Assembly: GCA_004431415.1 (NCBI GenBank)
Contig: QPMI01000271.1
Span: forward strand, 45,659-109,658
DNA: 64,000 nt
Direction of reading: 5' to 3'
Source of the DNA: Cyanophora paradoxa CCMP329
Lineage: Eukaryota; Plantae; Glaucophyta
Numbering within the stretch: position 1 is the first letter of the stretch; each line of letters begins with the position of its first letter. A program made the translations under genes and the position numbers. Of this stretch, positions 1-57,595 are shown in pieces. The notes below the pieces were generated by a model. The model did no database searches, was not told where the DNA came from, and saw only the letters and a list, made by a program, of their open reading frames with translations.

Positions 1-1380
1 AGCTAGGTGCTCGGTGGTGCGCGCTCGGATTCGCTGTACCCTGTTTTTGGACTTGGCTAATCGTTTTTTTAGGGGTCTAGCAGACTCTTACGCTAAATTT
101 AAAGGGCCACTGACTTGCCGTGCGCGTCAGTTGGGTCCGGGGAAGGGAATTTAACCTCGAGCTCGGCGAATCCAAATTATTAAAGATGTACATGTAGATC
201 TAGATCTAGAGAGCAGATCTAGATTCTAGAGACTTCCGAAGTTCGAGCCGGAAAAGGAACAAAGCCGCTGAGCCTCGGAGCTTGAGGAAAAAACTTGAAA
301 TCGAGGCCATGCCAGGCGAGCTGTCTTCGAGGCCTACGCGAGCTCGAGCTCGAGGCTAGGCCAGAGGTAGGTCGCGATCGATCGCGTCGCGGGCCCCGCG
401 GCGCGACCCGCGGCCGGCGCCCGGCGGGCGGGGGATGGTCATAGCTCGAGCTCATGCATGCGCATATGATCACAAATCGAACCTTATATGCCTGCACGTG
501 CACTTGACTCGGGGAGGCGCGCGGCCGCGGCTTGCAATTGCAATTGCCTAGAGGCTGGCCTCCGCGCGCGCGCGATCTGCATGCGCATGCGCGGGCAAAG
601 CGCGCGCGATCTGCATGCGCGCGGTTGGAGCGGCTGTGGCGTGCGCGGCTGGCGCGCGCGGCTAGCGACATGTACAGCTGCAGCAGACTGCCAAGCGCTG
701 AGAGCGCTATCCGATCATCGGATCGCGAGCTGTGCGGGCCGGGAGTGAGCTCGAGAACTTCGGAAAGCGGCCGGGCGGGGCCGGCGGCGTGGGGGGAGGA
801 AGTAGCAGGGGGGGTCCGTAAAAAGACTTTCCTCAGGGTAAGTTCGCACTCTCCAATGTGATTGGCTAGCGCGCGCGGCGTCCTCCCACGCGACCGCGCT
901 CGCGCCCGGCCTAGCTCTCGCAGAACGGAATGTCGGGCATGATGCGCGCAACGACCTCGAACTGGTCTGACCCGTACATCTGCTCCCTGTGCGTCGCTGG
1001 ACCCATTTTTGTCCCGGGTGTTGGTGCCTGTTCCTGGATCACCCTTTGGTCGGACGGGACCGGGAGACATGGTTTCGGGATCCCCTTGTGATGGGCTTTC
1101 AGGATATACCGCGCGGCCCGGGTTTTGCGGAGGTCGGGGAAATGGGATTTGGGGTAGGGTTAACGTTGGGCCCGAGGGACAGGGACAGGCCTAGGGGAAC
1201 TTCGGAAGTGATTTTCCCTTCCCCAATCAAAGTATCCGATGATCATAGTATGCCATGCATATGATGATCATCGGATCATGATCATGCACACTAGTACTAG
1301 TACTAGCTATAGTACTATGGACCGGATGACTCAGTGATATGATCGATATCCGATGATCGATATCAGAGCCCCGAGGCTCA

Positions 1381-2195
1381 CACTGCGGTACGGCGTTGTA
1401 TGGGCCCATAGTCCTGGAAGCAACTCCACGATCGCGACCGCTACCGTAAAACACTTAAGTAATGCGGGCACTTAAGTAATGCGGTCCCGAAATAATGCGT
1501 TTTCCGCTGACAAAACGCATTAATTTGGGGGCGCATTAATATCGAAGCGCTAAGCCGCCGCTAAGAGAACTGCGGTATGTACCCCCCTAACGCTGCCAGA
1601 AGGCTTCAAAACGCATTAATTCGGGGGCGCATAATTAACCGTACTGGGGGTCCGGGTCCAAAAACGCATTACTTACCGGCGCATTACTTAAGTGTTTTAC
1701 GGTAGCTCTACGATCGCCACAGCCATGCATTGCACGCTGCTATGACGCTCGATTGCAAGCATGTAGAGCTTTTACTAGCCATTGAATTAAGCTTGCGGAT
1801 TCGGTCGGCCCTTGAGTCACGTTCCAAAAAACGCCGGGGTACTGGGCAACTTTCAAAAAGTTTTTTTGCTCAAACGGCCAGTGCAAAAGTTTTTTAGAAG
1901 GAAGTCGGGCGCGTTAGTTAGAAAACGCCCGCCGCGGCGGCTACGATCTATCTAGCCGGTCATCTATCGTTTGGGTCAATTTGCTCCCAATCGGTTCAAT
2001 TTTGAGCGAGCAAGATCGATCGGCGCTTTTTCCAGAACCTAAGGCAAAACGGGGGGGTACGGCGCAAAGTCAAGTCCAGAACCTTATCGAAAAAAACTGC
2101 AAGTATGTAACTTTGACTTACCATTTAGCCATTGTTAAACCTCCGTTGGAGCTTTCTTCAAGCACTATGGGCCCATACAAACGCGTACCGCAGTG
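1381..2195. mobile_element. Non-autonomous CACTA/EnSpm-superfamily (CACTG-ended) DNA transposon
   Basis: Left end CACTGCGGTACGGCGTTGTATGGGCCCATAGT (1381) and right end ACTATGGGCCCATACAAACGCGTACCGCAGTG (to 2195) form an imperfect TIR of ~40-50 bp. A 3-bp TSD TCA lies at 1378-1380 and 2196-2198. No transposase ORF. Confidence 0.85.
1444..1702. mobile_element. MITE of Tc1/mariner-pogo type nested in the CACTG element
   Basis: Perfect 23-bp TIR CCGTAAAACACTTAAGTAATGCG / CGCATTACTTAAGTGTTTTACGG, flanked by TA at 1442-1443 and 1703-1704. Internal TAATGCG/CGCATTA repeats. Confidence 0.85.
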
Positions 2196-2216
2196 TCATG
2201 ATCATGCCATGATGAT

Positions 2217-2751
2217 CAGTGTTTGTGAAAGTTTACTCCCCGCCGGCACCCTGAAAGCTTTCATGAAAGCTTTCTGAAAGCTTTCTGAAAGGATTGCTCC
2301 CATACAAGGAAACCTTGCCCAGCGAAACCGGAAATATTCTGTTTCAAGCAAGCGTCCAGACACAAGTCTATGCTTTCCAATGTCATCTCCAACTGCAATC
2401 TTAAAGCCCGCATGGCCGGCGCCCTGTTGTGCTCCTGAGCTCCTTTCAGCCAAGTTTCAGTGGAAGAGGGGGTACAGCTCCGGAGGCGGCCACCTTCCCC
2501 AGCGGCCCCCGCCCTTCCACAACGTCATGCAACCGTTTGCCCCGTGTGGCATTATGCTTTGTTGCACTCTAGCTTGCTCAAATCCGTCGTTTTCCGCTAG
2601 AAACTCCGTCGGAAGGCCTGCTGTAGGGTACCCCCCCGTTGCAACGAAACTGAAAGCTTTCACCTGCGTTTTTGGGCATGAAAGCTTTCAGAAAGCTTTC
2701 TAGAAAGCTTTCACAGTGAAAGCTTGCGCAATGAAAGTATATCAAACACTG
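2217..2751. mobile_element. Non-autonomous hAT-type element
   Basis: TIR CAGTGTTTG...CAAACACTG with an 8-bp TSD ATGATGAT (2209-2216 and 2752-2759). Clusters of the palindrome GAAAGCTTTC lie near both ends (2253-2290, 2652-2725). Confidence 0.85.
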
Positions 2752-3067
2752 ATGATGATCATCGGATCAGCGGCTAGCTCACAGCACGCCGGTCCAACAG
2801 GGGCCGCGCCGGTGGATTGAATTAATTTTGACCAATCACGCAAATCACTCGACTCCGAGTCGAGTTTTTGACTCGGACTTTTTGACTCGACTTGCCGTAG
2901 TTCGCAAATTCTGACTCAACGTCGTGGGTACGGGCGAGTCTTCGTTCGCGCTCCCAGGTGAGAGCGAGAGCTCGGGTACGCCTAGCGCATTCGAACGCGG
3001 GAGGAGCGCGCAGGGCCGGCGGAGCCCGTAGCGCGATGGGCGACAGCCATACGCCGCCTACGAATCC

Positions 3068-3733
3068 TTATGCACGATCCCTATGGCTGAAGAAGCAGCG
3101 GACGAAGCCTGCGAATGCAGTAAGGCATCCCAAACGCAATGATCCCCATGAAGCCCACGTGCCAGCCACGCCGCACCCAGCACCGTCGAACAGAGGTAGG
3201 CATAAGTGCTCATTGCGCGCTTTAGCGCCCCAAACGCCTGAAAGCCTGGCAGAGACTTCGGCATCAAACAAAACGCCGGCGTTCTTCACCGAGTTGTCAA
3301 TCGACTCGGCGAACGTTGCGCCTAGCATGGTCCCGTTCCCGGCGGGATTGTAGCGGCGCGGGACTTGCTTGCCGCCTAGGGATGGCACTATGCATCCGCT
3401 ATCCGGATGGCCGGCGAGAGCCTCCGCACGAAAGAGCCCGCGGGCGGCCGCGGTGCTTGCTGGCGGGAACCGCTGCATAGCGACGTTGGCGCCACGCAGC
3501 CGGCGCGACACAGCCTGCGTCGCCTCGACAGTAGGCTGAATGCCGGGCGCTGGCGTGTAGTAGGCGTCTGGTGGCAGCTGCGGAGGCGGCGCTGGCTGCT
3601 GCAGCTGCTGCATCCATGCCCACGGGTTGCCCGCATCGTGGAAAGGAAGCTCCGGCAGCTGGAACACGTACTGGTGTGCTACGGGCGGCGCGAGGATCCC
3701 GGTCGGCAAGTCGGCGCCGCGGAAGGCGAGCAT
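3068..3733 (-). CDS. Hypothetical protein (221-aa ORF with a P/Q-rich N-terminal part)
   Basis: ORF with mixed, protein-like composition next to the transposon nest; no recognisable motif. Confidence 0.3.
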   Translation of the reverse strand: MLAFRGADLPTGILAPPVAHQYVFQLPELPFHDAGNPWAWMQQLQQPAPPPQLPPDAYYTPAPGIQPTVEATQAVSRRLRGANVAMQRFPPASTAAARGLFRAEALAGHPDSGCIVPSLGGKQVPRRYNPAGNGTMLGATFAESIDNSVKNAGVLFDAEVSARLSGVWGAKARNEHLCLPLFDGAGCGVAGTWASWGSLRLGCLTAFAGFVRCFFSHRDRA

Positions 3734-4172
3734 CCTGACGGGTATGCTAGCTAGCGCAGACGGCAGCGCCGAGCGATCTCGATCTGGTATACATATACAA
3801 GATCTTGAGAGCTATTTCCGCAAGTATACATTGCTTTTTATCAGTGCATATATTTGCTGTATAATATGCAGCCGCCGGCGCGGCCCCAGTCGGACCGGCG
3901 TGCTGTGCTATAGCGGCCACGGGCATGGCAGCCGCGCTGAGCTCGCAGCGCTAGCGCTACGCTAGCTGCAGCGCTATATATATAGCTAGCTGCACTGCAC
4001 CTGCATCTTGATACTGGTATATCTGCGACATCAACGTCGATCGCGACGTCGACGTCGACCGGGGGATCGGAATTGCAGCGAAATTCGGGGAAGCTTAACT
4101 AGTAAGCCTTGAAGGGCCCTAAAAGGGGGTCCGGGGGGGTACGTAGACGTGCCGTGCCTTCGCCGACTCGCG

Positions 4173-7173: not shown

Positions 7174-7849
7174 GCTGCGACAACAAAGACGTGAGCTCAA
7201 TAGAGCTTGCGGTTTTAACATCTCGACGCACCGCCTGGCTCTGCTGCTGTGGGTCCGACTTCGCAAGCGCCCACGGAGGAGACAGCTTCGACGCGTCGCC
7301 TAAAGGATACTCTGCGCCGAGCTCGATCAGAGGAGTAGTTGGAACTGGGCCGACACCCGCGACGACGCAAATAGCCGGCTCGCGCAGCTGTTGTCGCACC
7401 TCGCGCCGCTGCGCTACCTACTTTAAGAGCCATATTGTGATAGTGCTGGTGCTGCGCTGGTTCGCCTCGCCACAAGATCGGACCGGAGCCGAAACTGACG
7501 GGCAATGCACGTACGCGTGTACCCAGCCCTCAAATTTGATCGTCAAGCTGAAGTCTTAATCTTAAGCTTCTCGAAGTCTCTATAGATCGATATCGATATC
7601 TAGATCTAGATGTCGATCGCGATCCGGCCTCGTCGCAAGCTTGCGCTGCGCCCAGCTGCAGGCGCTTCCATAACACTCAGCCGGTGTATTGGCTTTCGCT
7701 CCCCGAATTTAAATCCTCAGAGTCCTTGAACCAACTGCAAGCCATCGATATCCGCCGGCGCGGCGGCCCGGCACCCACTCGCGCACGTACGCGTGCACTG
7801 GGGCAACCGAACTGGAGGTCGACGCAGCGCGAGGGCTAGCGAGCGGGGC

Positions 7850-13127: not shown

Positions 13128-13412
13128 CGCACTGCGCTATATTGCAGCGCTAGATTGGGGGGTAGGGGAGACCGAATACTCCGGCACTGATACTCCAATC
13201 TACCCCTATACCTAGGTTTGCAGTTGTTCAACTCCAGGTAGAATAGTTTGTGTAGCAAATTCCAGGCGTCGTGGGGCGCGTCCTGTGAGCAAACAACTCA
13301 TAAAAGGGGGTCTGCCAATCGGCTGAGCTGGTCGGGCACGGCCATTTTGGACTTTTGTGCTGCTGCGGAAGTCGCGTCGCGAAACCACGGTGCGGACGCG
13401 ATCTAGCGCCAC

Positions 13413-27829: not shown

Positions 27830-30217
27830 CTAGAGAGGGCGGGGAGCGGAGCTGGGGGCGGGGCGGGGCGGGGCGGGGCGGGTGCGGGCGGGGCCGGGCT
27901 CGGGGTCGGACTCGCTGAAGCCGAGCTGGCGGAGGACGCGTGCGAGGTAGCGGTCGGGCTGGATGCCGGCCCCCTTCATCTCCTCGAAGGCGGCGCGCGC
28001 CCCCGCGATGTCGTCCCCCCGGCAGTAGCCCGAGAGCAGCGACGTGTACGTCTGCACGTCCGGCGGCACCCCCGCCCGCTCCATCTCCGCCATCACCCGC
28101 CGCGCCTCCGCCATCTCCCCCGCCCGCGAGTGCGCCTGCCGCCGCCCGCGTGAGCGCTCGAGCGAGGCTGCCCGGCGGCGGCGGGGTGGCGTGCGGCGAA
28201 CTTTGACAAGGGCGCTGTAGGTTACGCGGTCGAATGCTATGTTGTGGGATTTCATGCGCTCCATGGCCGCCCGAGCCGCCCGCGCGTCCCCCGCCGCCCC
28301 GTGCGCCGCAACCAGAGTGTTGTACGCCACCACGCCGGCCCCCTGCCTCCCCTGCGCCCCCGTCGGCCCGCGCCCGGGTGCGGGGGCGGGGGCGGGGGCG
28401 GGGGCGGGGGCACCTCGAGCTCGTCGAGGAGGGCCTCCGCCTCCGCCAGCCGCGCCGCCCGGCAGTACGCCTGGCCCCGCCTCAGCCGCGCCCACGCCCG
28501 CGCGGCGGCCGTGGCGGGGCGGCGCGCCTTCATCATGCACGCGTACAGGAACTGCGCGTCCTCCCACTCCGCCCCCTCGAGCTTCGGCTGCCGCCCCGTC
28601 GCGTCGCGCGGAACGCCCGAAGCGGGGCGGGCGCACCAAGGCCGACTCGAAGACCTCGTGCGCCCGCGCGATGTCGCCCGTCTGCGCCCGCCCCCGTGAG
28701 CGGGCGGGGCCAGGGGCGGGGCGGGAGCGGGGGCGGCGCCTCGGCGTAGCCGTTGATGAGGGCGGCGAAGACGTGGGAGTCGGGGGGGACGCCGACGGAG
28801 CCCTCCATCTCCTCCTGCCCCGCCCCGCCCCCGCCTCAGCGGGTTAGAGACGGGGGCGGGGGCGGGAGGCGGGCGGGCGCCTTCATGGCGCGGGCCTCGG
28901 CCATGCGGCCCTCCCGCGCGAGGGCCCCCACCAGCGTCTGCCCCCCCGCCCCGCGTCGGCTCGGCCACCCCGGGGGCGCCCCGTGCAGGGCGGGCGGCGC
29001 ACGGCGTAGATGACTTCGTTGGGGGCGATGCCGGCGGCGCGCATCTCGGCGAGGGCCTGCTGGGCCCACTCGAGGCGGCCGCTGCGGCAGCGTCCCTTGA
29101 TAACGGTGGAGAAGGTGACTACGTCGGGCGCCAGGCCCTTCCCCGCGAGCGACGCGAACTCCGCCTCCGCCTCCTCCCCCATCCCCGACTCGTAGAGGGC
29201 GTTGATGGCCGCGTTCTCGCAGCGGATCTCCGCCGGCAGGCCCGCCGCCGCCATGCTCGCCAGCACCCGCCGCAGGTCCCCCACGCCCACCGCCGACGGG
29301 CCCCGCCGCCGCGCCGCCGCCCGCGCGATGCTGCGGATCACCGTGCTGAAGCTGCATTCCAAGAATTTAGTGGCGGCAGATTAGCTGCACGACGTGGAGA
29401 TTGTGTAATCTCGACTCCGCAACGTTCACAGATAAAACCCTCTATAGGAAATAGTTCCATGACATTCCCAATCAATTAAAGGACCAAAATTGTTTTCACC
29501 TGTACGTGTCCGGCCGCACCGGCCGCGCCCCGCTGACCATCTCGTCCAGGATCAGCAGGGCCCGCGGCAGCTCGTTCCCCCTGCACAGCCTGCGCCCAGC
29601 GCCCCGTCGCTCAAAGCAGGAAGGGCGGGCCGCAGAGTACACGAGGGCACCCGTCGAGGAGCGTGTTGTCTGCGGGGAGGCGTCAGCTCCAGGGGAGCGG
29701 TGGCTCGCGGGGAGCTCACAGTGGTACTCGTTCGCGATGCCCCGCTGCGTAGCCGACTCCAGGATGGAGAACGCCCCCTCGAAGTCCTTCACGCGAACAG
29801 CTTTTTCGATCTCCTCCCGCGTCACCATACTCCAGTGGCGCGTGTCGTGTTCGCGGCGCTCATGGTGAAACTTCGCCCCATCCGCCTCGGCATCGTTCCG
29901 CCTCCGCGCCCGCGGCCGCCTCTCGTACCGATCGCCGGCTGACGCGTACGCCTGAGCCCAACAGAGAGGCAGCGGAGACCTTGTGCAGCGGAGCTACCTG
30001 GAGCTTGGCCCTCGAAGCGCGTGCGTGGTCGATTCTCAAATCGCCTGCTCCCACGCTCCGATCGAGGCTCGTTCGTACGCGAGGCCCGGTCGTGCTCTGC
30101 TACCGGGGCACGGGCTGTCGACTTCGCTGCCTCTGGTTGCAGAGCTGATCGGTACATGCGAGCGCCGAGGAAGGCGCTCGCGATCCTGGGCGTGCTGGGC
30201 ACCGCGAAAGCGCACAT
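27830..30217 (-). CDS. Pentatricopeptide-repeat (P-type PPR) protein, probably plastid-targeted (multi-exon)
   Basis: Tandem 35-aa repeats such as PDVVTFSTVIKGRCRSGRLEWAQQALAEMRAAGIA and PDVQTYTSLLSGYCRGDDIAGARAAFEEMKGAGIQ; N-terminus MCAFAVP. Confidence 0.9.
29352..29499 (-). other. AT-rich GT-AG intron of the PPR gene, mostly a decayed rpoC/rpoC1 fragment (NUPT-like)
   Basis: The minus strand reads ENNFGPLIDWECH..YRGF, then after a 1-nt shift ICERCGVEITQSPRR. Removing the segment restores the PPR motif PDTYS-FSTVI. Confidence 0.8.
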
Positions 30218-30407
30218 CTCGGTCCAGCGACTCTGGCACTCGCGGTCACTATGAGCACACCGGCGGCCTAGCAGCTGCTCGGGCTCGGTCTGGGTTCGCG
30301 CCGTGGGCCGCCGATATCGATTTCTATCGTCCGCTTCTGGAAATCACGTACTCCGGGTCGCCGGGGTCGGCCACCACAGCGGCCATTTCCAGCAGTCGCA
30401 CGCAGTG

Positions 30408-31979
30408 ATGGCAGACATAGAAGACGGCACGGACCTTTACGAGCTGTTTGGAGTGAAGCACGATGCGACCAAGGAAGTCATCGTCAAGGCATATCGAAAG
30501 ACAGCGCTTAAGTACCACCCAGGTGCGCCCCGCATTAGCTAGAGCGCTTTTGCGTTGTAAAGGCGTGCCGGGCGAGGCCGGAGGGTCCGCGGCCTGCTCA
30601 CGCGAGCGCTCCCGCGGCCATTTCTTACGTATGCCGCGTTCTGCAGATAAGAATCCGGACAACCCGAAGGCGCATGAGATCTTCGCGAAATTCACCAAGG
30701 CGTACGAAACCTTGCTCGACCCCGAGAGGAGGAAGGCATACGACGATGCTCAGCGGGTGCGGGCGTGCGAGGATCCCGCAGTAGGATCTTCTTAATGCGC
30801 CCGCCGGCCAGGCAAAGCGCCAGAGGAAGGAGCGCATGGAGGCGATGGATACGAAGCGCAAGGACATGAAGAACAGTGCGCACCCGCTCCTCGCCCACTT
30901 GCCCCGCCGCCGACGGCCTGCGGCGCAGAGCTCGAGGAGCGGGAGAACGCGTGGAAGCGCAGGCATCAGGACGCCGAGGAGGAGGCCCGCCGCGTGCAGA
31001 TGGAGGTGCCCCCCGCGGCGGCGCCCGTGGGGGGGCGGCGGCTGAGGGCGCGGCAGGTGGAGAAGCTGCGGAACGAGGGCCTGAAGCGGAGGAAGCAGAT
31101 GGACGACGAGGCCGCCTCGAAGATCTGGGAGGCTACTGCTGCGGCGGCCGGCTCCTACGTCCCGGCCCACGAGCAGGGCTCCGAGGGGGACGTGAAGATC
31201 ACGTGGAGCTACGCGCGGGCTCCGTACACGGAGGAGCAGCTGCGGGCGGTGCTGGGCGTGTTTGGGGCGATCGAGGGGGTGGTGGTCGGCCGCAAGAGCA
31301 GCAGCGCCGTCGTCTCCTTCGCCAGCGCCGACGACGCGGTGCGGGCGCCCCCCGCGGCCCCGCCCCGCCCCGTCCGCCGCCCCCGCGAGCGCCCCGCGCA
31401 GGCCCGGGCCATCGCCCACTACGCCAGGGACGGCCTCGAGTTCAAGGCTGCCTGGGTCCGGGACCGCAACCGGCCCGGCGCACCGGCTGCGGGGCCGAGC
31501 GCGCGGCAGCCGGCGCCCGTCTCGAGAGGCTACGCCGCGTTCGCGGCGGGGGACAGGGCCCCATCGGACGTGCCGAACCCCTTCTCCGACACCCTGGTGC
31601 GCCCCGCGCCTGACCGGACCCGGGGGCCGCTGACGGGCCGGGGGGGGCGGGACAGCACACGCCAGGGGAAGTGCGGGCGCAGACGAGCCACGCCGAATAC
31701 GAAATGCTCGTTTTGCAGCGCATGAGGCAAGCCGCCCAGGCCCAGAAGGCCAGGGCCGCAGCCGCCCCCGCCCCCGCCCCCCCCGCCTCGCCTCCCCCGG
31801 CCCCCCCTTCCGACCCGAACCCCGCGGAGGACAAGGAGGCAGAGAGTGGCCCGTCACGAGAGCCCTCTCTTTCGCCGCCCCCGCCCCCTGTCGACGTCCT
31901 CATCGTCGATAGCGGGGGCGTCATTGAGGGCGTGGAACATCGTCAGAAGGGGCACAGGCCCCGCTCCAACGGCAGCTAG
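30408..31979 (+). CDS. DNAJC17: J-domain protein DNAJC17/Cwc23-like (J domain, coiled coil, RRM-like region; multi-exon)
   Basis: DLYELFGV...AYRKTALKYHP|DKNPDNP (HPD), LLDPERRKAYD, VKITWS...LRAVLGVFGAI...AVVSF and YEMLVLQRMRQAA. Confidence 0.85.
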
Positions 31980-44923: not shown

Positions 44924-45395
44924 GCTTCGAATTCTGAGCCTCGGCTTTGGAGGGCTGCGAGGCCGCGGCCGCCGTCTTTGCGTTCACGCCCACAAGCACT
45001 GCTCCCGGCCGCGGCACGTGCGCTGCGCTGTGCATTGGGCCGTCTCGCGCGAATTGCGTTCCTATGCCTCGTCCGAAGTCGACTTTCGCTTATGTGCAAC
45101 ATTGTTTTTTTTTAATTCGAATAGCACCATGCCATGATGCATATGGCTTAACTCAATGAGCTTGCCAAGTTGAAGCTCGAGCTCGAGATGCCGCGCGCGC
45201 CAGCGCGTGTTCGAATTCAGTGCACGTGCGCGGTACCGGTCATGATCAGTGTGTCACACTGCAGCTGTGACAGTCACTGAGTGCACGTGTGCGTATGCAG
45301 CGTGCATGCGCACTGATCATGACGCACGGCGCGCGCAGCTAGCGACGCAGCGATATCGATTTCCCGCGGAGAATCCGCCAGGATTCCGCCGGACC

Positions 45396-54165: not shown

Positions 54166-55222
54166 CCCCCGCCCCGCCGCGGCCGGCGCCACGCTACCAG
54201 CCGGCGGCGCCCTCGTCCTGAAACCCAACTTTCCCGCTTTTGGAGTCGCCCCGGGGCCCGCTGCCCTGCATGCTTGAGAGAGACTTTTTCCCCACCAGAG
54301 GTCGGTCACTGAGACACGGAGTTTCAAAACGAATAGTTTTCAAGCTGCATAGTTTGCGTGTGATCGCATAGTGGAGGATGTCCCCTGATTTCTTGTTCGT
54401 TCACTTGTACGTACCACTTCAGTCTACTTTAAAAGTTTCGCGCAGTCCCTAGTTCGTACAGTCCCGATTCGGGAAGCGCAGTCCTTAGTTTAGCCTTGAT
54501 GCAGTGTCTCGGTGAGCCCGTGTGTACTTCGTGTATAGCACCCACTCGATCCCGGCTTGCCAAGTTGACAGAATTCGATGAGAGAATTTCAAGCAGTTTT
54601 CTTGCCCAGCCCCCCCCCCCCCCCCCCGCCCGCCCCCCGCCCCCTTCCGCTGCGCATGCCTCTCCCTGCATGGAGGCGGCCCATATGTGACTCCCCATTC
54701 CCTGCGGAACTCATGATCACTGCGCATATGAATGCATGTCACACGGGGAACAGTACCAGTCCCTGATCATGAGTCACACTGAGCCCCAGATCTAGACCTC
54801 TTGGACTCCGGGAACCAGAACTCGGAACTTCGGAACTGTACCCGCGGGCCCGGGGCGGATCCGGACTCGGGAGACCCACTGGCATGGCATGGGCCACTAG
54901 TACTGGCCGGGCCATGGGCAACAACCGTGAACAACATCAAGGAGTTTCACATGTACATCATGGCATCGCCCACCGTTTCAAACTGAACGGAGTTTGCGTC
55001 ACGCCCCGCCCATTGTTAACTTCTTCCGCCAATGAAATTAGCCCAGCGCAAACTTGAGCTCGAACTTGGCCTCGTACACAGTGGCGTACACACGCGGCCA
55101 CAACGGTCACAGTAACGGTCAGCAGGCCGGCTTGCTAGTCAGCTTCCCTCGGCTAGGCCGGACTAGCTAGCTTCCCGCCATCGCGCACGCCCGAGCGCGA
55201 GCATTCCTGCACGCCGCCGTGC

Positions 55223-57056
55223 ATGAAGCAGTCAAAGCGAAAGGAACCCAGCCTCTGGGATGACGGCTTCGACGAGGCCCGACGTCGGCACCGCTGGCAC
55301 GGCAAGCGACCCGACAGCAGCAGCTCGTGGGCCGGCAAGGGCAACATGAAGCGTGTCAACAAGATCACTCAGCAGGCGCGCAAGGCGAAGGAGCTCAGAC
55401 ACCCAGCTGTGTCCAGAACTCAGCGTCGTTCGCCCGAAGCCCTTCCATTTCCCGCGCCCAGGTGAAACGATTTTGGCGCGAGTCGAGGGCGAGTTCCCAA
55501 CACAGACGAAGGCGAAGCGCGGCGACTTCAACTACTCCGTCAACGGCGTCATCCTTCGGCGCTTCGTGCGCCCGGAGGACTCCGATGTGAAGGACTGCGG
55601 GCTCGGCAGCGTGATCATCAAGGCAGACGGGGAGCAGGCAGCCGTGGCCATCGCAAACCACCTCATCTACTACTCGAACGTGACGGTCCGCCCGCCGCGC
55701 CCGCGCCCCGTTCCAGCGTCCGATGCCCGTGCGCGCAGGTTCACGCACCCGCGAAGGTGGTGGCCGCGGACGAGTACAAAGCCCTCAACCACGCCGATCC
55801 CCACATCTACGTCTGTAAGCAAATCATGACGTTCCCGGGCGACGGCTCCTTCCAGTTCGACGTCGCCCTCGCCTTCAACGCGAGGCTCAAGCGAGTGGCG
55901 AAGAAGAAGATGGCGTGCTTCCTCCGGCCGCTGTCGAGGCCGGAGGAGCGCGTGGAGGCGATTGGCTACCTTCAGGACGCCGCCGCGAACGCCCTCAAGC
56001 GCCGGAAGACCGGGACGCAGCTTGTCAACGTCAAGATCCCGGTGGCCGGGCCGGCAATGTTGGTCTGCGGCTCTTATGACTCGTTCGAAGTTCTTTTTCC
56101 TATCCTCTAACGGTGCGCATCGCAGGAGAACATCGTGGCGCAGGTCGCGCACGTCGCCACGCCCATCGACCCGAAGACGGGCCAGCCGATCCCGGTTGAC
56201 AAGCTGCCGGCGGCGAATCGCTTCGTTATCGAGCTTCCGGACCGCGAGACCGCTGCTGGTGGAAGCCGCTTCCTTTTTCCCGCTCGCTGTTCTTTTTCCG
56301 ACCTCTTTGCAGCTGTTCTCGGTCCCTCCGGCGTGGCGCAAGCGTCCAAGCGCGTCTGCAAGCGGGACGCGGACGGGAAGGCGATCCGGAAGCACAGCGA
56401 GATGCAGACCGTCACCGTCGAGAAGGCGTACGGCGGCTTAATCGTGCCGCGCCACACGGGCTCCCATGACGTCGTCCAGTTCGACGAGCGTGCGCCCGGC
56501 CCGCCCTCGCCGCGCCGCTCGCTTACGAAGCTCTGCTCCTTGGGCGCGGCAGGTCCCGGTCGGATCGTGGCCACGAAGCGCTCGGGCAGGAAAGGTGGGC
56601 ACGTCACGCTCGAGCTTCCGAGCTACGAGTACGGCCCCGACGGCGAGCGCATCGCCAGCCTCGCGGGGCCCCTCGCGGCTGTCCCCGTGAAGCGCCCGCG
56701 CCGGTGCCGCGCCGGCGCCAACACCGTCGCCAAGGCGCCGCCTGTCCCCGAAGCAGCCCCTTCAGAACCTGCCGCCGCCGCCCTGCCGGCCCCCGCCGCC
56801 GCCGCCCTGCCGGCCCCCGCCGTCGCCGCCCCGCCGGCCCCCGCCGCCGCCGCCCTGCCGGCCGCCGCCGCCGCCGCCCCGCCCGCCCCCGCCCCGCCGG
56901 TCGCCGCCCTGTCGGCCCCTGCTGCTGCTGCCCCACCGGCCGCTGCCGCCCTACCTGCCCCCGCCGCATCCGCCTCGGTCCCCAAGTGCGCCCCCTCCCC
57001 CTCGCCCCCCGCTCGGCTACTTGCTCGCCTAATCCTGCAGCAGGAAGGATCGCTAA
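55223..57056 (+). CDS. Orphan multi-exon protein with an Ala/Pro tandem-repeat tail
   Basis: Successive exon ORFs (MKQSKRK.., GETILARVEG.., VVAADEYK.., ENIVAQVAHV.., PGRIVATKR..) separated by short GT-AG introns; no motif recognised. Confidence 0.6.
56771..56970 (+). repeat. Coding 24-bp minisatellite (AAAALPAP-like units)
   Basis: GCCGCCGCCGCCCTGCCGGCCCCC repeated several times with variants. Confidence 0.8.
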
Positions 57057-57595
57057 GTTAATTACCACTATTAAGTTACCTCTCAGAGTCTCCGACGGTG
57101 ATCATGCCATGCCATGATGATGAGCATCGGATCATGATCATGAGCATATAAGCCGGGCGGGCCTCAGGCCCTGAGGCCTGCCGCAGTGCCTCTGGGCGGC
57201 TCGGCGAGGCTGACCATGAGCCGCAGGGCCTCAGGGCCTCGCGAAGCCACTGCCAGCCTGGCCGCAGGCTGACTCGGTCGCAGTGCCACCGTGGCACGGT
57301 GGCTTTTGAGCCTCAGATGGTGCGCGTGCATCATCACTGAGTCATGGCATGCCTTAGTGGTCGACGGGAGGGGCCCGGGGACCGGGTGTTTCAAGATTGG
57401 GGCTTTACTCGTCACTGCTAGCTGGGTTCACTGTTCGACGGTTCACCAAGTGAACTCGAACTTTTCTTTCTCCCTTGAACGCCCCAACTACATGGCGATT
57501 TGTCGTTCACCGTTGTTTCTCATCACGACAGCTGCCTCGGAGGCGAAGCGACGGGTTTACAATCGAGGGGGGTGCGGGGTCGGCGGGGCGGCCCG

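Follow-up and report, generated by a model that had tools for sequence, protein, structure and literature searches.

A spliceosomal intron composed largely of rpoC/rpoC1-like DNA in a nuclear PPR gene of Cyanophora paradoxa

The PPR gene and its rpoC1-like intron

The subject of this report is a single intron in a nuclear gene of the glaucophyte Cyanophora paradoxa CCMP329, and the source of the DNA from which that intron is made. The gene encodes a pentatricopeptide repeat (PPR) protein and lies on the minus strand of a 64,000-nucleotide stretch of contig QPMI01000271.1, hereafter the window, whose overall G+C content is 0.71. RNA-type contigs, one from each of two runs (X15 record 10 and X17 record 13), place the extent of the PPR transcript at 27946-30334, and omit approximately ten short segments with GT..AG ends. 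The intron of interest occupies 29352-29499. It is preceded by an exon at 29500-29588 (...LPRALLILDEMVSGARPVRPDTY), placed by the joints in the RNA-type contigs, and is followed by an exon at 29003-29351, in which PPR repeats were identified (Pfam PPR_2, E 8.5e-16; PPR_1, E 4.9e-12). These matches were obtained with exons searched singly. As detailed below, the first 111 nt of the intron show homology to the part of rpoC/rpoC1 that encodes the zinc-binding N-terminus, so that an rpoC1-like segment is embedded in an intron-rich, GC-rich and expressed nuclear PPR gene, at a contig depth that is the same as that of its flanks.

The intron is 148 nt in length and has a G+C content of 0.42. On the minus strand it begins GTGAAA and ends TGCAG, and it is in phase 2, splitting a serine codon AG/C. 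The eight resident introns of the same gene are 49-66 nt long, with G+C contents of 0.64-0.91, and in the neighbouring gene three introns have lengths of 53-124 nt and G+C contents of 0.67-0.81. It is apparent that the rpoC1-derived intron is still far more AT-rich than the introns resident in the gene. The trinucleotide CAG closes the upstream exon (29500-29502) and is repeated directly at the end of the intron (29352-29354).

The 3′-terminal 37 nt of the intron (29352-29388, minus strand; G+C content 0.49) form a tail that holds the 3′ CAG, a GC-rich run (CTGCCGCCAC) and two branch-like motifs, CTAAT at 29380-29384 (29 nt from the AG) and CTAAA at 29366-29370 (15 nt from the AG). In the other local introns, CTSAS motifs are situated 16-22 nt from the AG. 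Judged by its distance from the AG, CTAAA would be the likelier branch site of the two. A prior sequence-only reading of this stretch had described an AT-rich and unusually long intron of 148 bp in a PPR gene, with a CTAAT branch-like site ahead of a terminal TGCAG and with CAG at the end of the upstream exon as well as of the intron, and the coordinates and compositions given here bear out that description.

Searches of the intron for repeated or structured elements gave negative results. Terminal inverted repeats were not found in 29352-29499, nor was a second copy of the intron found in the window, and an Rfam scan of the intron yielded no family, only a sub-threshold chance match.

Removal of the intron from RNA and its presence in DNA

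RNA-type contigs of X15 and X17, which derive from two studies, contain a joint, from 29351 to 29500, that omits exactly the 148 bases of 29352-29499. The joint reads CT..AC on the plus strand, which is GT..AG on the strand of the gene, and the three ambiguous letters at it are the CAG repeat. The coverage of 29352-29499 by RNA-type contigs was zero, and the depth in the bin 29412-29545 equalled that expected from its 46 exon bases alone. The run data consist of contigs, which do not disclose the efficiency of splicing, any rarely retained forms, or branch points and lariats.

The same segment is present in genomic DNA. Two DNA contigs, X1 record 4 (a 2019 run; 28492-31000) and X3 record 19 (a 2024 run; 28419-31000), traverse the intron colinearly through both junctions, with 0 differences. 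No DNA contig that skips 29352-29499 was seen. Every sampled word of the intron region was contained in all 14 of the DNA runs, whose short-read contigs carry the insert with both of its flanks, and the depth of the DNA runs over 29412-29545 was that of one contig, equal to the flanks. Because the segment is present in DNA and skipped in RNA, it is a true, single-copy, spliced intron and not an artefact of assembly, and its GT and AG ends are those of a U2-type GT-AG intron. The sequence-only reading had proposed spliceosomal removal, had named the exon junction as the point to be looked for in RNA and had raised the prospect of an assembly chimera; the exact joint in the RNA-type contigs settles the former, and the short-read DNA contigs that span the insert and both flanks in 14 runs, together with that joint, refute the latter.

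Excision of the intron joins ...RPVRPDTY / S / FSTVIR... in frame, as had been predicted (PDTYS-FSTVIR). Retention of the intron would instead read TAC AGG TGA, an immediate stop, so that splicing is needed for the synthesis of the full-length protein.

Homology of the intron to rpoC/rpoC1

The segment 29389-29499 (minus strand; 111 nt, G+C content 0.40) matches the motif C-E-(K/R)-I-F-G-P-x-K-D-W-E-C-H-C-G...R-G-x-x-C-E-R-C-G-V-E-V-T-x-S-x-V-R-R of the β′/γ subunit of RNA polymerase. The minus-strand frame beginning at 29497 reads ENNFGPLIDWECHGTISYRGFYL and then encounters a stop codon, while the frame beginning at 29475 reads ...GFICERCGVEITQSPRRAANL.... The homology is thus divided between two blocks, of which the first (block A, 29459-29497) reads ENNFGPLIDWECH, and the second (block B, 29389-29439), one frame over from the first, reads GFICERCGVEITQSPRR.

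Comparisons were made with a panel of rpoC/rpoC1 loci, 120 of them from bacterial genomes and 120 from metagenomes. When 128 kb of sequence was searched using nhmmer and a DNA profile of 238 rpoC/rpoC1 sequences, a single match was obtained, at 29499-29397 (E 2.5e-12, 42.7 bits). In tblastn searches, 120 of 120 panel N-termini matched two colinear high-scoring segment pairs, at 29497-29459 and 29442-29389, which lie one frame apart and have a sum E value of 3e-6; the next-best place in the window had an E value of 0.02. Local alignment of the segment at the DNA level gave a score of 61, compared with a shuffle maximum of 24.4 +/- 2.3. Finally, 71 of the 73 matches returned by a phmmer search of PDB with the second block were RNA polymerase γ/β′ subunits, aligned at residues ~68-99, with cyanobacterial γ first. 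The 23-aa first block produced no match in Pfam or PDB, the query being too short.

The nhmmer E value survives correction both for a genome of 100 Mb and for the whole scan, and the homology of the first 111 nt of the intron to the zinc-binding N-terminus of rpoC/rpoC1 is therefore secure. Chance resemblance, like an assembly chimera, may be regarded as refuted. Both the identification of this zinc-binding region and the two frameshifted rpoC-like readings had been put forward from the sequence alone, and both stand.

The homology starts at base +1 of the intron: profile position 2 aligns with 29499, the pairwise DNA alignments begin GTGAA, and the GT donor (29498-29499, minus strand) corresponds to positions 2-3 of the TGT codon for Cys in FCE(K/R)IFGP. 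The 5′ splice site is thus itself rpoC1 DNA. No such assignment could be made for the 37-nt tail, which gave no informative match when compared with the window and with the 240 rpoC loci. A reading of the tail as ...AAPVTHIWY, with a deletion, was considered and rejected, as the alignment was not significant.

Decay and age of the fragment

The rpoC1-like copy has suffered three indels. The codon for the second zinc-binding cysteine is missing, as are about 8 further nt (~4 + 8 nt in total), and one extra T produces a +1 frameshift. Segment 29389-29499 thus has neither an intact frame nor all four zinc-binding cysteines. At sites that are invariant in the panel, approximately one substitution in roughly 37 was counted by eye on the alignments of the two blocks; an automatic count over 47 invariant columns gave 7 mismatches and 3 gaps, a figure inflated by gaps misplaced between the blocks. 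The segment is thus a remnant of a pseudogene in a moderate state of decay, as inserted DNA would be expected to be.

The insertion is not very recent, given the three indels and the fact that no other run contig is at least 95% alike over 29412-29499. The decay need not all have occurred at the PPR locus, since it could predate the arrival of the fragment there if this had been copied, by segmental or templated repair, from an older stretch of plastid DNA residing elsewhere in the nucleus. This must be considered very unlikely, as the depth of the DNA runs, at one contig, indicates that the genome holds no second copy at least 95% alike, and there is none in the window.

Source of the rpoC1 DNA

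In photosynthetic algae, rpoC1 is plastid-encoded, which favours a plastid donor. The third codon positions of the two blocks are about 78% A/T, and this also points to a plastid, being as expected of an AT-rich plastid gene. Two further arguments come from the literature, namely that the DNA filling nuclear breaks comes far more often from organelles than from any other source (PMC3443670, PMC5570036), and that hundreds of matches to plastid DNA captured in the nucleus (NUPTs) have been reported in C. paradoxa (PMC5570036), the genome of which is about 100 Mb in size, with a GC content of 67.6% and 9.2 short introns per gene (PMC6704402). It is plausible, then, that the donor was the organism’s own plastid.

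Two observations weigh against this assignment. First, AT-rich bacterial rpoC genes of the Clostridia type (...YRGKVCERCGVEITKSKVRR) and the Margulisbacteria type, as well as that of Prochlorococcus, score as high as or slightly higher than the single plastid type in the panel. The best DNA scores were those of non-plastid loci, with L155, L191 and L212 at 61 and the Prochlorococcus locus L018 at 59. Secondly, apart from the nuclear contig itself, no run contig at least 95% alike matched 29412-29499; as no plastid contig was found at that level, the present plastid gene, if it was the donor, has now diverged by more than 5%.

The high scores of the non-plastid loci would be accounted for if free bacterial DNA, from an AT-rich Firmicute, a cyanobacterium or some other associate in the culture, had been captured at a break. 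Also in keeping with such a source, the VEIT-K/Q-S motif is present in Clostridia-type RpoC. The signature residues of the fragment (Y-R-G, x-I-C and T-Q/E/K-S) fit the plastid RpoC1 of L165 and AT-rich Clostridia-type RpoC about equally well. The ranking of donors is, however, uninformative, because the panel is without the organism’s own plastid and because the differences in score between its members are within the noise for approximately 100 nt. With organelle DNA so prevalent as a filler of breaks, a bacterial donor is considered quite unlikely.

The motif W-E-C-H-C-G is often regarded as cyanobacterial or plastid. Among loci L001-L120 it was observed also in Clostridia (Acutalibacteraceae and Oscillospiraceae), Actinomycetota, Margulisbacteria/WOR-1 and Chthonomonadaceae. 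Its presence in many non-cyanobacterial bacteria means that the motif is not exclusive to cyanobacteria and plastids, and that it cannot, by itself, assign the fragment to a plastid.

Direct searches for the donor were negative. A metagenome scan for G-F-I-C-E-R-C-G-V-E-I-T-Q gave no match, a word search with a 41-aa piece gave no candidates, and no donor was evident among the 240 bacterial, cyanobacterial and red-type plastid rpoC/rpoC1 loci.

A separate observation concerns two metagenome contigs in the panel, L165 (1-10020) and L223. They have G+C contents of 0.29-0.30 and a tightly packed rpoB-rpoC1-rpoC2-rps2-tsf-trnR(tct) arrangement, and are red-lineage-type plastid genome fragments. 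Their RpoC1 proteins have N-W-E-C-H where the others have D-W-E-C-H.

Origin of the intron

The explanation favoured here, which is held to be probable though well short of assured, is that captured plastid rpoC1 DNA created the intron in one step, via the repair of a break. A 5′ fragment of rpoC1, which encodes the N-terminal zinc-binding region of the plastid RNA polymerase, would have been captured in a coding exon of the nuclear PPR gene. The break would have fallen between ...TACAG and CTTC..., and the capture most likely took place during end-joining repair of a double-strand break. By chance, the insert would have started with GT, from the TGT Cys codon, and its end, whether or not 3 bases of the target were duplicated, would have been a CAG preceded by A-rich branch-like motifs. 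Exactly the inserted 148 nt could then have been removed by the spliceosome and the PPR frame restored, giving a one-step birth. Following the insertion, the copy would have undergone neutral decay, with the acquisition of three indels, a frameshift and at least one change at an invariant site. Three parts of this account are inferred, namely the donor being the organism’s own plastid, the mechanism of break repair and the previously intron-less state of the site.

The anatomy of the intron may be weighed against a different history, in which an intron already stood at this position and the rpoC1 fragment was inserted into it or took the place of most of it, the 37-nt tail being a remnant. The tail speaks for such a history, lacking rpoC homology and having a GC-rich run, branch-like motifs and the AG; moreover, NUPTs in other organisms are usually located in introns (PMC12730881, PMC12863932). 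The 5′ end of the intron tells against it. As the 5′ splice site is rpoC1 DNA, and neither an older 5′ splice site nor a GC-rich remnant of an older intron lies on the 5′ side of the fragment, creation is favoured over replacement. It would also be a coincidence for an intron to lose its old donor and yet gain a new GT at the same phase. Nor does the tail resemble resident intron sequence in composition, as it is more AT-rich than every one of the resident introns, which again favours birth. Replacement is accordingly thought unlikely.

There are also points that count against the birth of the intron by capture of plastid DNA. The CAG direct repeat at the two junctions is as in the break-repair model but is weak evidence for it, because it is 3 nt long and is partly forced by selection for a working 3′ splice site. 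The tail is without a match to rpoC, and the 3′ splice site may not be rpoC1 DNA. The gain of an intron at this site is plausible but unproven. The locus was found only in runs that bear the same organism label, and a word search with the 116-aa downstream exon detected no PPR kin in its length range, longer kin being outside that range.

Surroundings of the intron

Adjacent to the PPR gene, at 30351-30929 on the plus strand, is a gene with a DnaJ-like motif (...HEIFAKFTKAYETLLDPERRKAYDD), whose GT-AG introns measure 124, 55 and 53 nt. Only some 17 nt separate the start of its RNA contig from 30334, where the contig of the PPR transcript ends. The head-to-head orientation of the two genes, with almost no spacer, suggests a shared bidirectional promoter region.

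Within the PPR gene, very GC-rich short stretches of the CCGCCC/GGGGCG type at 28814-28880 and 29300-29326 match dozens of unrelated DNA contigs. In X1 the depth at these stretches reaches 331, up from about 27, and in X3 it reaches 1386, up from about 57; loose ends are numerous. They look like a dispersed low-complexity repeat, part of it in an intron and part in coding sequence. Two RNA-supported skips in the gene, at 28468-28524 and 28814-28879, have ends that read CG..CG and CC..CG as printed, with 3-5 ambiguous letters; these may be GT-AG introns after shifting, or GC-rich non-canonical introns.

Elsewhere in the window, the G+C content of positions 1-4000 is 0.56-0.57, compared with 0.63-0.83 in the remainder, and many islands within this block fall below 0.46. 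No organelle-like coding signal was found in the AT-rich islands at 7504-7635, 13174-13270, 45042-45190, 54312-54469 and 57042-57138.

Comparison with known intron gains and significance

The closest parallels to this intron involve mitochondrial DNA. Introns derived from that source have been described in Bigelowiella natans (Curtis & Archibald 2010, as cited in PMC3443670 and PMC4757882). They resemble the present case in being GT-AG introns of nuclear protein-coding genes that are recognizable as organelle fragments and have been read as captures at breaks. They differ in that the donor was mitochondrial and was matched to the organism’s own organelle genome, whereas the intron described here is of rpoC1 type (plastid/bacterial) and was matched to the genes of other organisms. 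In Daphnia, according to the summary in PMC3443670, new introns are flanked by short direct repeats and one is homologous to mitochondrial 16S rRNA (Li et al. 2009; also cited in PMC4757882). Shared features are the break-repair model, the organelle filler and the short repeats in direct orientation at the two junctions, which in C. paradoxa are CAG/CAG. The Daphnia gains, as summarized there, are polymorphic in populations that include intron-less alleles, in contrast to the intron in C. paradoxa, which is carried by all 14 DNA runs.

Like ordinary NUPTs (PMC12863932, PMC12730881, PMC5570036), the fragment is short, decayed and non-functional, and represents a plastid-type gene copied into a nuclear chromosome. 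The insertion sites described for those NUPTs are existing introns, exons (as exon patches) and regulatory regions; by contrast, the rpoC1-like fragment supplies a 5′ splice site and accounts for three quarters of an intron. Intron birth is not among the effects of NUPTs given in a 2026 review of the subject, and no description of a spliceosomal intron created from plastid DNA was found in the literature, although the coverage of that search was incomplete and the absence is not proof.

Introners (PMC9860276, PMC3609843) also consist of inserted DNA that is precisely spliced, and in their case too a target-site duplication can supply a splice site. They form mobile families of many copies, however, and often have terminal inverted repeats, whereas the intron studied here, single copy in the window and by DNA-run depth and free of terminal inverted repeats, has a housekeeping, organelle-type gene as its source. 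On these grounds an introner or transposon derivation is not supported.

How new spliceosomal introns originate has long been asked, and the DNA from which an intron was made can be identified in very few cases. One route that has been put forward is the capture of organelle DNA at breaks, for which a few mitochondrial examples provide the support. To these the present case adds a plastid-type donor gene, a 5′ splice site that can be traced to a specific codon, and removal of the intron seen in the RNA of two studies. It may be suggested, tentatively, that in this genome introns are born repeatedly, and still traceably, from plastid DNA captured at nuclear breaks, and that the breaks may be excision sites of transposons that duplicate 3 bp, which would explain the CAG...CAG flanks. 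Should own-plastid origin and absence of the intron in relatives be borne out, and further cases hold, C. paradoxa would provide a natural system in which to measure how often random organelle DNA is ‘splice-ready’.

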